A stretch of 64,000 bases of DNA from Syncephalis fuscata S228 (Eukaryota > Fungi > Zoopagomycota). The position numbers and the translations under genes are program-made. The first letter of the stretch is position 1. Each line of letters begins with the position of its first letter. The notes beneath the pieces were generated by a model. It had not been told where the DNA came from and searched no databases. It worked only from the letters and a program-made list of their open reading frames with translations. Shown in pieces: positions 32,656 to 58,141 of the stretch. The stretch spans positions 310,001 through 374,000 of the forward strand of contig JAHLTZ010000017.1 of assembly GCA_025786725.1 (NCBI GenBank), written 5' to 3'.

Positions 32656-34515
32656 TTAATCTATGTTCATAAATTTATACAGCAAATTTCATGTAGTTAG
32701 TGTTTAAATCAACAATATATAAAATTATTTACCAACTATTAGTGCAAGTTATTAAACACACGCAGTGCATAAAGTGTAATTAGTTTATAACTATTTAATA
32801 TACAATGGCACTTACACCCTATCAACACAAGTTATTACACAAGAGCAGTACATAACATATGCTTAGTGTATCGATAATTTATATAAAATGCCACTTACGG
32901 ACTATTAATGTTGTTATTGAATACATACAGTGTATATCACATGGTCAGTATATATTTGGTTAGTACAAAGTTTCACCTACAAGCTACCAAATACACGCAG
33001 TACATAGAACATGTTTAATATACAGTTGAGTAATATACTATGTCACTTACGACCTATTGATAGCCGTTATTAAAAATGTAATCCATGCCGCATAATTAAT
33101 ATATAGCTGGTTAATATACAATGTCACTTACGTTCTATTAATACAAGCCATTAAACATACACATTGCATGGTATATATTTAGCGTATATTTGCCTAATAT
33201 ATAGAGTTATTTACCAGCTATTAATATAAGTCGTTAAACAGATAGATTGTGTGACATGTTTAACACATAACTAACTAAAACATAATTTCATTTACCAGCT
33301 ATTGATATAAGTTATTACACACACGTAGTGGATGATATATGCTTAGTAAATAGTTAATTAATATAAAATGTTATCTACCTTCTATTGGTGCAGGTTATCC
33401 ACATCAAATAATTTATGATTAGCGTATAAATAATTACTATACAATGTCACTTACTAGCTATTAATACAGATTATTACACAAATGTGCATGTCATATACTT
33501 AGTAAATTATCAATTAACATACAATGTCATTTACCAGTTGTTACTTCAAGATATTAAGCAATCACAGTACATAGCATAGGCTTAGTTTTTAGTCGATTAA
33601 TAAACAATGCCATTTACCAGCTATCGATATAGGTTATCAAGCAGACGTAGTGCATATCATATATTTAGTGAATGAACGATTAATATACAGTATCACTTAC
33701 GTTCTATCGATACAAATTATTATACAGATGAAATACCCGACATATGTTAGTACATAAATAGCTAATTTGCAATTCCACTTACTTCCTATTGATACAAGGG
33801 ATTACACATCATATGGTGCATGCTTAGTGTATAAATAATTAACATACAGTATTACTTACCCCCTAGCAATACAATTTATCATACAAGCATAGTATACAAT
33901 CTATATTTAGTGCGTAGCTATTTAATATATAATGCCATTTACCAACTATTAATATAAGCATTGCATAAACGTAGTACATAGCATATGCTTAGCATATAGT
34001 TAATTAATATGCAGCGTCATTTACCAACTATTGATACATGATATTAAACAACCACAGGGCATGATATTTTAGTATAATCGATTAATATAGCATTTTACTT
34101 ACAGGCTATTAATGTACGTTATTAAACAAATATGGTACATGTTATATGCTTAGCGTATAGCCAATAAATACACGACGTCACTTACCAACTATCAATACAG
34201 GTTAGTATACAGGCATGCATGCCACATACTTAGTGTATAGTCAATTAATACATAATTTCATTTACTTTCTATTAATACAAGTTATTAAACATAAAAATTA
34301 TATGGTGTATGTTTAGCATATAATAACTAATATATAATGACGCTTACGATCTATTAACGTGGTTTTTCAGTGTATACATTATTTAATTAAGTGAATGACT
34401 GATTATTGTAATACGACATACCACGACGGCCTAGAGTCGGCATGGCATCCACCGTAGCTGTGATAACTACCAAGGCCATAAAAATGGTACATACGACGCC
34501 AATAGAAAACTTCAT
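32656..34515 (-). CDS. Secreted prepro-peptide whose mature part is encoded by 21 consecutive 3-nt micro-exons: MKFSIGVVCTIFMALVVITATVDAMPTLGRR-DQIAFVGGKPAAKAAERPFRFD*
   Basis: Exon 1 is 34422-34515 (31 codons + G, donor GTATGT). Micro-exons (plus coordinates, minus sequence): 34348-50 ATC, 34266-68 AAA, 34186-88 TTG, 34103-05 CCT, 34025-27 TTG, 33943-45 TTG, 33860-62 GGG, 33783-85 GAA, 33701-03 AAC, 33618-20 CTG, 33535-37 CTG (acceptor CAA), 33455-57 CTA, 33379-81 AAG, 33296-98 CTG, 33215-17 CTG, 33132-34 AAC, 33051-53 GTC, 32981-83 CTT, 32899-901 TCC, 32816-18 GGT, 32733-35 TTG. Last exon starts at 32660 (AT TAA). 20/21 acceptors are TAG; all donors begin GTA. Confidence 0.8.
32661..34421 (-). 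repeat. Degenerate tandem array of intron + 3-nt exon units (70-83 bp period, 22 introns of 67-80 nt)
   Basis: Approximate minus-strand consensus: GTAAGTGACATTGTATATTAATTAACTATAYRCTAAGCATATG...TGTGTTTAATAACTTGTATTAATAG-NNN. Only the splice signals and the 3-nt spacing are nearly invariant. Confidence 0.9.
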
Positions 34516-35839: not shown

Positions 35840-37535
35840 AGATTACAGTAATTAAATTAAGTTTATATTTGCATAAATACACTTTTAATATACTTGCTTT
35901 ATTGATGTTTTTTTAATTATTAGATGGTAATAAAATACGAAAGTAGATATAGCACACTAATTAAATATAATTGAAATGAAACCATATGTTTATTACTAAA
36001 GTTTGCACAGATGAATAGAGACGACTAATTCTGGCATATAGCAATATAATGGCGCCACTAGTTAAAGTTTAATAAACCGGAATATTGAATAAAACTTGAT
36101 ATAAGAATAGACTTGAATGGTAGTTGCTGGATGGTCTTGATTTTGCTAAATGTATACCTAAAGTTTATAGACTGGCAGCATGTTCACGTCACCAATGCCA
36201 GTGTTTTGGATGTGTCGATTACACTATTTTCATAAGTTTATACAAAATGTAACATAGTTAGCGTATAAATCAATACTATGTAATTCTACTTACTAACTAT
36301 AGATTGTTAAACACGCAGTGCGCAGTATGTTTAATGCATAGCTAATTGATATATACGTAACTTACCAGCTATTGATGGCAAATTATCGGGCACAATGCAT
36401 ATATTAATTTATAGCTAATTGCTATACAATGGCACTTACGTACTATTAGTGTCAAATTATTGGACACACAATACATAGCATATGTTAATTTATAGTTAAT
36501 TAATATACAATATCACTTACAAGCTATTAACATCAGGTAATCAAACAGTGTGTTATGTATTACCCACAGTAAATTAAACATAAATGATACATTCTATTAA
36601 TATGTAGCATTACTTACGATCTGGTAACATCGGTTAGGTAATGCAAGCAGTATTTAATTAGCTAAGTAGTTAATTATTGTAATACAATATATTACCACGA
36701 ATTGGAGCCGGCTTAGCATCCACCATGGCTGTAGCGGCTATCAAAGCCACGACAATGGCACAGATGGCGGCAATAGAAAGCTTCATGGTGATATGGATTT
36801 GTTAAGAAAAACAAACAAAATAAAAGAGTGTCTAGGGTAAAATAGATGCAATGAACGTTTGGCAGAAAGTAGAGTACGATGATAATGCTACTATTTAGTT
36901 GTGTGCATTTTGTGAGCTATTTAAGTTCATGTTTATTCCAAAGGATCAAGGAATGTATTCTATGGAATGTACGATTAAATGGAACCTAAACCAATAGGTT
37001 ACATCCATATGCTAACATAAAACATGTGTATAACAATATCAATGGTGTGTTAACATGTTGCCAAGTCTTTACTTCTATGCCCTTGGCAAATAATATACTG
37101 TAGGGTCTTTACTTTAATTTTTTAACAAATAACATGCTGCCAGATTTTACTTCAATTATTTTTAACAATTACGCAGATAAAATGGCAATATTAATGGTTC
37201 AACGTATATGTGGTGGAAATGTATATATTGATGTGTATTTTACCATTTCACATAGTTCAAACGTGCAGTGCAAACTAAATTGATTAATGCTACAGAAACA
37301 ATAGGGATGCATCGCTACACATTTGCTGTTGTTTTAGCCAAGGACCTCATTGCTCAATATCTGCATGCATCTCAAACAGCTCTTAGCGCTGATACAGCAA
37401 CAGCATCAATAAATTGGCCTTGTAGTGCTTTACGGCTATTTACTAGTGCGTAGGCTAATTATATTTTTAAATCATAAAAATGTACTGATTAGTTTGATCG
37501 TTTATTCAATTTGACATTGTAATCATTGCTTAAAA
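35840..37535 (+). repeat. About 1.7-kb duplication, copy B (intact copy)
   Basis: Matches 5496-7179. Confidence 0.95.
36219..36786 (-). CDS. Secreted peptide with five 3-nt micro-exons: MKLSIAAICAIVVALIAATAMVDAKPAPIR-DPLPVM*
   Basis: Exon 1 is 36696-36786 (30 codons + G, donor GTAATA). Micro-exons: 36618-20 ATC (CAG acceptor), 36521-23 CTT, 36440-42 TAC, 36366-68 CTG, 36294-96 TTA. Last exon starts at 36223 (TG TAA). First intron, last intron, 3' region and promoter are homologous to the 34515 gene. Confidence 0.8.
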
Positions 37536-55334: not shown

Positions 55335-58141
55335 TCAGTTAGTCTCTCGTTGAATACTGACAGTGGGGGATTGCCAAATATCATAATCATTATCAAGAGT
55401 ATGATCACCCAATGGGCGAAGTGCCAGTACCGTTAAATAGTAACGGCCATTAGGTAAATCCGATACAGTGTGCCGATCATCGAGCGATTCAACATCACCA
55501 GTCCAGGGAAGGGCCAGTTCATAATTATCGGGTGTGTCGTCATTACGGCTTAGTAATTCGCTAATACTATTAGGAACAATACCTAAAAGCTGTTTTGTTT
55601 CGGCCGAGTAAATACGAACAAAAGATAGGCGTGTTGCGTATTCAAGCCGAATGTAGACCCAAGGGAAATCGTAATTTTTCATACTATAGGTGGCCGTTTC
55701 GTTAGGAAGGGCAATCTGCGTATTATCATTTAAATTACGCAAGAATGGATAATTACTGGCCAGATTAAATACGTGAATATCACGGAGACGGCCCTTCATG
55801 CCTAAATAAGGCACATAGACGGCATCCTTACTGCTCGTACTACTATGACAGCGCCACGATGAATTTGCCGTTGGATCGATCGATAAATAGCCAGAATAAA
55901 CCCATCTTTCTGCTTCAGGGAGTGATCTTGGTGGTCGAATGGTTACGGTGATGTCACGTGACTCACCGGCTGGTATTTGAATTTCTTGAGTGGAGAAGGT
56001 CACAGCAGCGTAAATACGCTTTTGAAGTGGTGTAGCTGGGACCATTTGTGAGGCATTAAAGCTTTGTACCGATAGAGCAGGCTGGTGCCTTAAACGATAA
56101 GTTTTCGCCTCTTGATCGTTATTGAGAATTGTAATAGTTTTTTGAATAGTTGAAGTAGCATCTGCCTGTTGTTGCGTATCATTAAGTGCGAGACGAGATG
56201 GCGTAACACGAGTTTTGCTTATCAATGCTTGTTTTACATTGATCATGCCTGCACCCTGACGAGCTACCGACGAAGTAATCCAGTGCTTATTGATCGACTG
56301 CACTGTTGGTTTACCGGCATTTTGGAAGGCTTCTCGAATATGCGCTGCTGTAACATTTGTCTTGCCATAAGCTTGTAAATAAAGTGCAATTGATCCTGCA
56401 ATGTAGGGACTGGCCATTGAAGTGCCGCTAAGTGTAGCATAGCCGTTGCTAATTGTGAGTGGATAAGTCGAGTAGATTTGGCCGCCAGGAGCACCAATAT
56501 CGGGCTTAATCTCTAGCATAGGACCGGGGCCCCACGATGCAAAAGTCGACACTTGATTGCCATTAGGATTTGTAACATATCGAGCATCGGCTTCAAAAGT
56601 GGTAAATACCGTTTCATTGTCAGGCTTTGTTTTAATTGCTTCGACAAGCGCATTGCCATTGATGCTATTAATGCCTACTAATGGTAGTAGCGTTGGGTTG
56701 TCGAGTTTAGGCTGCAATGGTCCATCGACATTATTGTAAACGACGACGGCAATGGCACCGGCATTTTTAGCTATACGGGCCTTGTCGTCCATAACACAGC
56801 CACCACGTTTAACCAGCATAACATGACCAGTATAATTATTAACGAGTGCATTACAGCCATATTCGTTATTAGTATCGACGAGTGAGAATGGAACGTTTGT
56901 AAAATTAAGTGTATGGCCTGGATCGGCCGCTAGATACTCGATAGTATAGTCACTTTTAATATTCACGCTAAATATTGTAGCAAATACTTGGAGCTATCAA
57001 GCGCGGTCACCGATAAAGCATTATCAGAGAGTGCAGGTGACGATGTGGCCCACAATCCGGTCGTACCATCATTGCCGGCAGCTGCCACTACAATAATGCC
57101 ACGTTGTGCTAAACGGTCGGCTGCTAAGCCATCAGGAGCATCGGCCCATCGAACGGGCGAAACAATCGAAAGATTAACAATATCCATACCGTCGACGTAG
57201 GCCCGCTCCATACCAGCAATGACAAAATCAGAATCGGTATTTTCCTGGCAGCCAAATACTCGGTAGGCGCCCAGGATAGCGGCTGGCGCAACACCCGTCA
57301 CTTTGGTATCATTGCCACCAATAATACCGGCGACATGTGTACCATGGCCATTACAAGTATCACGAGGGTCTTCATCGGGCTTTTGCGTGCCAATGCCCGT
57401 AAAATTATCCCCAACAAAGTCGTAGCCATAGGCAACACGGCACCCTGGACCGAAACAGCCGCCCAATGCCGGATGCGTATAATCAATGCCAGAATCGACG
57501 ACACCGACTTTAATGCCATTACCGTTGTATTTTTGCTGCTCGTGAAGTTCTTTCACACCCGTTTCTTCGTGGATGGCATCAATTTGATTTACGGTAGCTA
57601 CAGTTGACTCATGAGGGCGGGCAATCGATTTAAGTGTCCATACAGCAATAACATTGTCAAGACTTTTAATACGTTCAATATTATCGGCTGCTGTATCAAC
57701 GCTGATGGCATTTAATAAATTTGCAAACGATAATCGTGGAGTAAATTTAATACCAGCATTTGTCATTTTTGTGCGTAATTCATCGTGTTGTTTTAGTCTA
57801 TCATTGCCGACATCGGCAAGTTCAATCATAAGAATAGCTTGGATTATATTTTTGGTATTTTCTGTTGATGGTACTGCTTCTGTAGAAGTAGTGCTATTGT
57901 TAATGATAGTTGCATTAATGCTAGTAGTAGTTGTTGTTGTTGTATTGGTACCGGTGGTATGTGTAATGTTACTATTGCTAATAATAGGTATATTAGCAGT
58001 AGTGGCGATGTTAGAATCAATGGTAGCTGTGCTGTTATTATTGATATTGTTATTATTATCAGTGATGGAGACTGCTACGGCTTGGTGAACGACTTGCAGC
58101 ACAGCTGCAACGCAAACGATCAAAGCAAAACGAATTTGCAT
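55335..58141 (-). CDS. Secreted S8 subtilisin with PA and Fn3-like (DUF1034) domains; apparent frameshift near 56965
   Basis: Signal peptide; catalytic motifs VGVVDSGIDY, GHGTHVAGI and SGTSMASPY; PA domain VKRGGC..DDKA; RQGAGMINV. Confidence 0.92.

Follow-up and report, generated by a model that had tools for sequence, protein, structure and literature searches.

Gene B of Syncephalis fuscata, a probable secreted prepropeptide gene with a mature part encoded one codon per exon

Can a gene be written one codon to an exon, with an intron after almost every triplet, or is such a pattern simply a repeat that happens to resemble splice sites? The question is raised by a short locus, here called gene B, at positions 36786-36219 on the minus strand of a 64,000-nt stretch of Syncephalis fuscata contig JAHLTZ010000017.1 (GCA_025786725.1); this whole stretch is referred to as the window. 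S. fuscata, one of the Zoopagomycota, parasitises other moulds. Overall, we think it likely that gene B belongs to a Syncephalis family of secreted prepropeptides in which a conserved leader exon is followed by a mature part laid out at one codon per exon.

A preliminary description of the locus had proposed a leader exon ending in phase 1, five micro-exons with their introns, and a last exon of two bases plus stop, and this structure was recovered exactly on the minus strand. Gene B has a 91-nt leader exon, five exons of 3 nt, six introns and a last exon of two bases and TAA; its 111-nt reading frame gives a conceptual product of 36 residues with the C-terminal end KPAPIR-DPLPVM*. The introns measure 75, 94, 78, 71, 69 and 70 nt, are all in phase 1, and have GT...AG in six of six cases. 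The features are listed here with reference to gene A, the long tandem paralog, and to copy C, a near-identical copy of gene B, both of which are taken up below.

36917-36924, minus strand: TATA-like box TTAAATAG, about 130 nt 5' of the ATG, in the promoter/5' leader block common to the paralogs
36696-36786, minus strand: exon 1, starting with ATG at 36786, 30 codons plus one base (phase 1); homologous to at least 20 annotated S. fuscata proteins
36621-36695, minus strand: intron 1, 75 nt, GTAATA...CCAG, with a CCTAAC branch-like motif; positional counterpart of gene A intron 1
36618-36620, minus strand: micro-exon 1, ATC, giving Asp with the carried-over G; identical in gene A (34350-34348) and in copy C
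36524-36617, minus strand: intron 2, 94 nt; positional counterpart of gene A intron 18
36521-36523, minus strand: micro-exon 2, CTT, equal to gene A CTT at 32983-32981; the downstream A/B homology block begins here
36443-36520, minus strand: intron 3, 78 nt, GTAAGT...AATAG, a member of the repeated family; identity with L003 array units reaches 81%
36440-36442, minus strand: micro-exon 3, TAC
36369-36439, minus strand: intron 4, 71 nt
36366-36368, minus strand: micro-exon 4, CTG
36297-36365, minus strand: intron 5, 69 nt
36294-36296, minus strand: micro-exon 5, TTA
36224-36293, minus strand: intron 6 (last), 70 nt, 76% identical to the last intron of gene A
36219-36223, minus strand: last exon, coding start; TG completes Met, then TAA stop
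35989-36218, minus strand: putative 3' untranslated region, with the 3' end at a conserved AATAAA (35994-35989)

The leader exon is hydrophobic and signal-peptide-like, ending VDA-KPAPIR, with what look like n-, h- and c-regions (MK, a hydrophobic stretch, VDA), and it is conserved in at least 20 small proteins. Annotated paralogs share with gene B a conserved promoter, 5' leader, 3' flank and AATAAA. The TATA-like box stands at an equal distance in gene A (34658-34651) and copy C, and upstream alignment finds it conserved in A, B, the intronless paralog D elsewhere in the window, and the loci L003, L004, L005 and L007; the 3' flank is conserved among A, B, D, L003, L006 and L007. The ending of two bases plus TAA recurs in gene A (AT+TAA) and at L003 (AA+TAA).

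The evidence that such exons are coding comes chiefly from family members in which similar peptides are encoded both with and without introns. L003, on contig 44, has 35 micro-exons after its leader exon (one measures 6 nt and the other 34 measure 3 nt) and then the AA+TAA last exon. When joined, these micro-exons specify a 37-residue peptide with six cysteines. Aligned with mature P0125 and P0122, which are encoded intronless at L006 and L007, it matches them Cys for Cys and also in the motif NYPYPS. Shuffling the order of the micro-exons reduces the alignment score from 110 to 21.9 +/- 5.3 (z = 16.6) against P0125 and from 78 to 22.5 +/- 5.8 (z = 9.6) against P0122, and none of 2000 such permutations attains the observed score. 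Likewise, the micro-exons of L128 (contig 11) give CKCQDEDGNCTSC, and the intronless P0129 at L129 has CKCRDDDGYCTSC (z = 11.1, again with none of 2000 permutations scoring as high). The joins at these two loci involve 27-35 micro-exons per paralog, and since the match depends on their order, the 3-nt pieces must be read jointly, in that order and in that phase.

Further lines of evidence point the same way. In five arrays (A, B, L003, L128 and L130), the frame that is used contains no stop in 121 codons, and the other two contain 2 and 13; order-shuffled arrays have a mean of 6.0 stops, and only one of 5000 is stop-free. The fifth of these arrays lies in a second species: in S. pseudoplumigaleata KZ990530.1 (L130, GC content 44%), positions 718-3470 hold the family leader and then an open frame of 34 consecutive 3-nt exons, with introns of 54-86 nt that are 60% alike (50 +/- 3% when shuffled), GT and AG in 34/34, and a conserved CACTAAY branch motif. 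The architecture therefore predates the split of the two species and was maintained. The protein annotated there, P0138 (350-1577), is a mis-model to which an upstream extension has been added and which reads part of intron 1. Public annotation also already contains two 3-nt exons, because the deposited P0123 model can be rebuilt only as leader exon, CCA, AAG and an exon starting ATC that reads through the next intron. Another deposited model, P0124 (L004, 5001-5406), could not be rebuilt with GT/GC-AG introns, and it probably places a micro-exon non-canonically.

Regardless of how gene B itself is judged, then, comparison of these sequences indicates that the micro-exon architecture of the family is real coding sequence. 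Gene B is a member of this class by its anatomy and homology, with signals, frame, promoter box and AATAAA intact, and its own transcript would be expected to be spliced in the same manner.

The contrary view would be that nothing is spliced here at all. The leader reading frame would run on into what we call intron 1 to give a 38-residue product ending YYNN, and the array would be a minisatellite in the 3' untranslated region. The read-through frames of A and B do both have YYNN after the leader, and satellites from metagenomes (L018, L035, L048 and L072) do carry the same ATAG-NNN-GTAA pattern. In those satellites, however, the triplet is invariant, whereas here it is the most variable element and the splice signals are the most conserved. 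The spacing of the triplets is always a multiple of three despite frequent indels in the introns, and the resulting frame is free of stops; the order of micro-exons encodes peptides collinear with those of intronless paralogs; the second species has kept the architecture even though its introns have diverged and are GC-richer; and in other family members, read-through of intron 1 ends after about 6 codons. We consider an unspliced gene B very improbable.

The search with the leader exon that the preliminary description had proposed was answered in part, by family proteins and by further arrays in both S. fuscata and S. pseudoplumigaleata. An alignment search with contiguous leader reading frames matched five annotated S. 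fuscata proteins, and an exhaustive profile search found 19 proteins with the leader, 18 from S. fuscata and one from S. pseudoplumigaleata; among the 1.84 billion representative proteins searched by profile, matches came from Syncephalis only, and all of the matches to the leader family are proteins of genome annotation. The leader, MKLSI...VDAKPALVRR, is strongly conserved and common to all members, with the RR site present in nearly all of them. The tails are unrelated or fast-evolving and often Cys-rich, and a Pfam search with the Cys-rich paralogs returned no family. The mature parts are non-repetitive, and there is at most one RR site, at the leader end. A fungal Kex2-processed repeat protein was considered and rejected, there being no peptide copies separated by dibasic sites. 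On another S. fuscata contig, P0135 has the leader fused to an SVWC module (Pfam E = 4.7e-07), so the leader is common to unrelated mature domains.

The micro-exon architecture itself was found at four further S. fuscata loci and in S. pseudoplumigaleata. Among 72 family introns, 71 start with GT and one with GC, all 72 end with AG, 47 start with GTAAGT and 64 end with ATAG; introns range from 67 to 94 nt, and exon lengths in the five arrays are always 3, 6 or 9 nt. In an alignment of the units, conservation is concentrated in the donor GTAAGT, in an ACTAAG-type motif at the center, in a TTTAATAAC-type motif and in the acceptor AATAG; these splice signals are the best conserved positions, and the three bases between units are the most variable. 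Branch-like motifs of ACTAAG and CTAAY type are conserved in the unit alignments of both Syncephalis species. The preliminary description had also called the introns mutually similar and chance unlikely. Both points stand up: intron units of A and B are 62-66% alike, within and between the genes, against 54 +/- 3% for shuffled sequence, a homology beyond common AT-richness, and the three-unit pattern ATAG-NNN-GTAA (three times, spaced at 60-85 nt) is present 12 times in the window but absent from all 100 of its dinucleotide shuffles; the architecture also recurs at the further loci. Within the 64-kb window, the intron unit is confined to A, B and C.

If gene B is expressed as its relatives suggest, the general pathway from gene to peptide can be sketched. 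The conserved TATA-like promoter would drive transcription. The six GT-AG introns, all short, which appear to be copies of one unit of about 78 nt carrying GTAAGT, a CTAAY-like branch motif and AATAG, would be recognised by intron definition, the usual mode for short introns in fungi, and then removed. Because all introns are in phase 1, a codon would be built across each junction, one 3-nt exon contributing its final base and the following exon its first two, and the 111-nt frame would be translated into the 36-residue precursor. The family leader would serve as a signal peptide and short pro-piece, usually ending in RR; in gene B, signal-peptide cleavage after VDA would release a proline-rich peptide of 12 residues, and cleavage after the single Arg would leave six. 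We infer that the B peptide is secreted and processed, as we infer any role it might have in the parasitism of host fungi.

The long neighbor of gene B has the following layout.

32656-34515, minus strand: gene A, long tandem paralog, with a 94-nt leader exon, 21 micro-exons, 22 introns and a 55-residue product

Gene A lies on the same strand as gene B, 1.7 kb away. Twenty of its micro-exons are 3 nt long and one is 9 nt, its acceptor being displaced by 6 nt. The two genes match in two blocks. In the 5' one, which includes the promoter and leader as well as intron 1 and the micro-exon after it, identity is 70% over 361 nt; in the 3' one, which takes in the final four or five units together with the 3' flank, it is 67% over 598 nt. 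The tandem paralogy proposed earlier is borne out by the leader, the phase, the first and last introns and the NN-TAA ending, all common to both genes, and the first micro-exon, ATC for Asp, is indeed identical. Intron 2 of gene B and intron 18 of gene A both precede the micro-exon CTT and can be aligned over about 64 nt. They correspond by position, and A and B thus differ by a single block, 16 consecutive units that are absent from B. We also considered intron 2 of gene B as a visible chimera of introns 2 and 18 of gene A and rejected this, as it has no clear breakpoint and aligns with A intron 18 over its first ~64 nt.

A further close relative of gene B, absent from the preliminary description, lies elsewhere in the window.

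5873-6434, minus strand: copy C of gene B, leader exon from 6434, frameshifted by one-base deletions

The block 5496-7179 that contains it (1.7 kb) is 98.9% identical to the gene B block 35840-37535. The two differ at 18 positions. Twelve of these are one-base deletions; every one of them is in C, and the leader exon contains three. Either copy C is decaying or the assembly is poorly polished at this place.

Several observations weigh against gene B as a functional peptide gene, and some against the family reading more generally. The mature part of gene B is six residues long and has no Cys; the mature peptides of A and B have no relative among the family proteins; and the gene B leader is one codon short, with IR in place of the usual RR site. 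Gene B resembles an internally deleted A-type gene and may be decaying, and its near-identical copy has a frameshifted leader. Neither a word-indexed protein search with contiguous leader reading frames nor the exhaustive profile search returned a product of spliced A, B or L003; the 3-nt exons of P0123 were probably, rather than certainly, placed from transcript evidence; and 12 introns had no excess RNA structure, as a possible aid to splicing, compared with shuffles (z -1.95 to +1.27).

The points specific to gene B can be brought together in a different explanation, namely that it is a truncated, decaying member, an A-like gene that lost 16 internal units by recombination between intron units and whose peptide has no function, while the remnant may still be transcribed and even spliced. 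The missing units are exactly those between the common ATC and CTT micro-exons, and the shortened leader lacking the site that nearly all members have, the six-residue mature part with no family relative and the frameshift in the duplicate are all as decay would have it. Against this, six of six introns retain GT, AG and branch-like motifs, and the frame and NN-TAA ending are intact; the promoter box and AATAAA have been kept despite the divergence of A and B, which suggests continued constraint; the 16-unit difference may be a loss in B or a gain in A; and the one-sidedness of the 12 one-base deletions in C makes sequencing error possible. Decay of gene B seems to us unlikely, while deserving to be kept in view, and we continue with gene B as a member of the secreted prepropeptide family.

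The same comparisons speak to how arrays of this kind change. It had been proposed that the gene grows and shrinks one amino acid at a time, by unequal crossover or slippage of units of about 80 bp. The units are homologous, as this requires, but the comparisons did not show residue-by-residue slippage, A and B differing by the one 16-unit block. Across unit pairs, moreover, micro-exon identity stays at 0.27-0.31, the random level, whatever the identity of the introns, and where introns are 80-95% identical, the flanking micro-exons are only 31% identical. In the L003 array, introns reach 90-92% identity in the unit pairs 6/9, 21/24 and 22/25, and the L003 peptide has no extra length compared with its intronless paralogs; both the L003 and L128 peptides are collinear with theirs, almost without length change. 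Intron likeness is thus decoupled from the codons, so the introns evolve in concert or by copying and the codons evolve under selection. The present arrays act as constrained coding sequence rather than as a repeat that slips freely. For the constant phase and spacing, the simplest origin is duplication of a module of one intron plus 3 nt, and the growth idea may hold for the origin of the arrays and not for their present behavior.

Whether the arrays or the intronless genes came first is a separate matter. In a tree built from the 5' untranslated region, leader and 3' flank only, the micro-exon gene L128 pairs with the intronless L129 with support of 100/100, and from flanks and leader, the micro-exon gene L003 falls within about 0.15 changes per site of the intronless L007, near L006. 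Micro-exon and intronless genes are therefore interleaved in the flank tree, and the state has changed at least twice. The introns of L003 are on average 70% identical to one another, which makes them more diverged than the flanks of L003 are from those of L007. We somewhat favor old arrays and a one-step, cDNA-mediated loss of all introns over repeated insertion. If wholesale loss is the right history, each intronless gene is the fossil of an mRNA that had been spliced correctly.

Repeated insertion would mean that a mobile, introner-like intron entered an intronless peptide gene many times over, the intronless state being ancestral. It would account for a single intron sequence family, up to 92% alike, with unrelated codons between its copies, and for the promoter and 3' flank that micro-exon and intronless genes have in common; another insertion, apparently mobile, also sits inside array introns of L004 and L005. 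It would, however, need about 30 insertions, each placed exactly in phase 1 of one codon after another, and the whole series would have to be repeated independently in two or more subfamilies; the ends of the micro-exons have no target consensus. Moreover, the divergence of the L003 introns relative to the L003-L007 flanks fits old introns and a recent one-step loss; arrays occur in two species; the window has no copies of the unit outside the family genes; and the introns show no excess secondary structure. We hold an origin by mobile introns to be improbable, and prefer old arrays from which some members lost all introns at once.

Several features of the paralogous loci were recorded alongside these comparisons. 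At L006, positions 5001-6483 form a tandem duplication of about 1.25 kb with two different intronless genes (P0125 and P0126) that have their 3' untranslated region in common, and between them, near 5765, lies a third leader-like open reading frame with a truncated signal peptide. L006 was considered as a classical retrogene and set aside: on the upstream side, homology stops about 60 nt short of the ATG, and on the 3' side it gives way to an A-rich run, but these signs are not diagnostic because the stretch belongs to the local tandem duplication. At L004 (from ~5757) and L005 (from ~5190), a similar insertion lies in an array intron just past the donor region. It begins with a T-rich run followed by GAA(A/G)AGCTTGTG, and P0121 is a chimeric model that reads into it; the insertion may be a mobile element that prefers array introns.

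The window also holds an intronless family member.

17964-18197, plus strand: paralog D, a Cys-rich precursor of 77 residues encoded without introns; leader, promoter and 3' flank are those of the family

The leader of paralog D ends VDAKPALVRR, and the deposited annotation has no gene at this place. An exon of 432 residues encoding an M17 peptidase lies at 21593-22891, with counterparts in S. plumigaleata and S. pseudoplumigaleata that are 82% identical. The locus around the ortholog of this peptidase in S. plumigaleata (L002, 21.7 kb) has neither a leader-like sequence nor an array, in a synteny comparison that ends short of the region adjoining an RCC1-like gene. Dispersed repeats with 71-84% identity also occur in the window (57165-57527 with 63860-63498; 15338-15643 and 7571-7756 with 18466-19702), some of them flanking paralog D.

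Outside Syncephalis, metagenome contigs were scanned with the three-unit ATAG-NNN-GTAA pattern. L018, L035, L048, L072, L106 and others proved to be satellites of about 70-80 bp with an invariant triplet (GGA 45 times, for example), and serve as negative controls. L076 (Ga0256407_10060259, GC content 15%) has, at 69-3190 on the plus strand, a 437-residue kinase/B-box exon followed by at least 50 putative exons of 3 nt; its introns of 22-30 nt (GTA...TAG) are mutually dissimilar, its triplet frame is open over 50 codons that include W, C, P and G, and its only relatives are metagenome proteins of first-exon length. L026 (20-3155, minus strand) has 84 one-codon triplets. Together with L122 (2144-3133, plus strand), L019, L022 and L016 (29-550), it belongs to a set with GC contents of 14-17%, runs of 14-84 putative one-codon exons and introns of about 26-28 nt, for which the triplet frame is the only open one; the nine leading introns of L016 are near-identical 28-mers. 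A soil contig, L080 (Ga0190273_10010733, GC content 45%), has at 3-544 on the minus strand eight variable triplets; the 75-nt introns that separate them are 78% alike and carry GTAAGT, GCTAAC and TATAG. This array, next to an ankyrin-like frame, is fungus-like but sits in a gene of another kind.

It is conceivable that one-codon exon arrays are an unrecognized general way of building and diversifying genes, present in several eukaryote lineages and including metagenome cases such as L076 and L026; we offer this tentatively and would not yet wager on it. Were it true, homologous introns of one phase would make recombination frame-safe, permitting shuffling at the level of codons and the loss or gain of whole blocks, as between A and B. 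Any donor could splice to any later acceptor, so that one locus might yield combinatorial secreted peptides; intronless paralogs would be reverse-transcribed fossils of spliced mRNAs; and the spliceosomes of several lineages would routinely handle long runs of 3-nt exons.

Within Syncephalis, the family has consequences of its own. It would show that standard gene finders, like RNA-seq aligners, are missing a class of secreted peptides: in S. fuscata, genes A, B and D are unannotated and other family members are mis-modelled. In models of exon recognition, a 3' splice site and the next 5' splice site only a few bases away could not both be occupied, and a family with up to 35 successive 3-nt exons would be a strong test case for intron definition, for the order of spliceosome assembly and for its sterics. 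The interleaving of micro-exon and intronless paralogs would make it a rare system for studying wholesale intron loss or gain within one genome. Finally, the family looks like the fast-evolving secreted-peptide arsenal of a mycoparasite, and might be a source of candidate effectors or antifungal peptides.

The literature that we searched contains no description of tandem arrays of 3-nt exons, but partial likenesses to known systems are several. A plain minisatellite was among the candidates rejected, as the triplets stay at random-level identity even where introns are 80-95% identical and the frame is open over 121 codons. Conotoxin superfamilies combine a conserved prepro region with a hypervariable mature peptide. 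The Syncephalis family is like them in its conserved prepro region and its fast-evolving, often Cys-rich mature part after a dibasic site, a likeness of pattern only, since there is no homology and the conotoxin mature region lies in one ordinary exon. The HYP effectors of cyst nematodes likewise come from a secreted-protein locus of a parasite with modular, frame-preserving variation in how many short coding motifs it has and how they are ordered, but their variable domain is transcribed as a single exon, the variation being genomic, within that exon and without micro-exons (PMC11228951).

As for the introns, the many members of one sequence family recall introner-like elements and suggest intron copying. 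Introner-like elements are scattered over unrelated genes, however, whereas the Syncephalis units are in tandem, 3 nt apart, in one phase and, as far as seen, in one gene family; the extra-stable folding of introner-like introns was not found in the 12 introns compared with shuffles. As for the exons, spliceosomes, fungal ones included, are able to join exons of 3 nt or less in Coprinopsis, plants and animals; in Coprinopsis cinerea, long reads revealed 27 exons of 3 nt in 26 genes (PMC12230235). Those are isolated micro-exons of 1-3 nt in otherwise normal genes, unlike the Syncephalis arrays, in which up to 35 follow one another and make up the whole mature peptide.

The closest known kind appears to be the micro-exon genes (MEGs) of schistosomes. 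MEG exons are typically 6-36 bp long, and alternative splicing is a hallmark of MEG diversity. Schistosome MEGs are described with exons of 3-81 bp and introns of up to 5 kb (PMC10526429), and with a first exon that encodes a signal peptide, followed by very short symmetric exons that specify most of a small secreted protein, within a lineage-specific multigene family of a parasite (PMC10526429, PMC10399815). The Syncephalis genes are similar in these latter points, with a putative signal peptide in the first exon and a product predicted to be secreted, and most of their coding sequence after the leader lies in consecutive tiny exons with lengths that are multiples of three. A profile search of the 1.84 billion proteins and of Pfam disclosed no sequence homology of the family to flatworm MEGs. 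The Syncephalis genes differ further in that almost all exons are exactly one codon long and that each intron, of about 78 nt, is a copy of a single unit and lies in phase 1; they also have intronless paralogs, and the organism is a fungus. In this context, the arrays of gene B and its relatives are best regarded, on present sequence comparisons, as an extreme variant of micro-exon genes.

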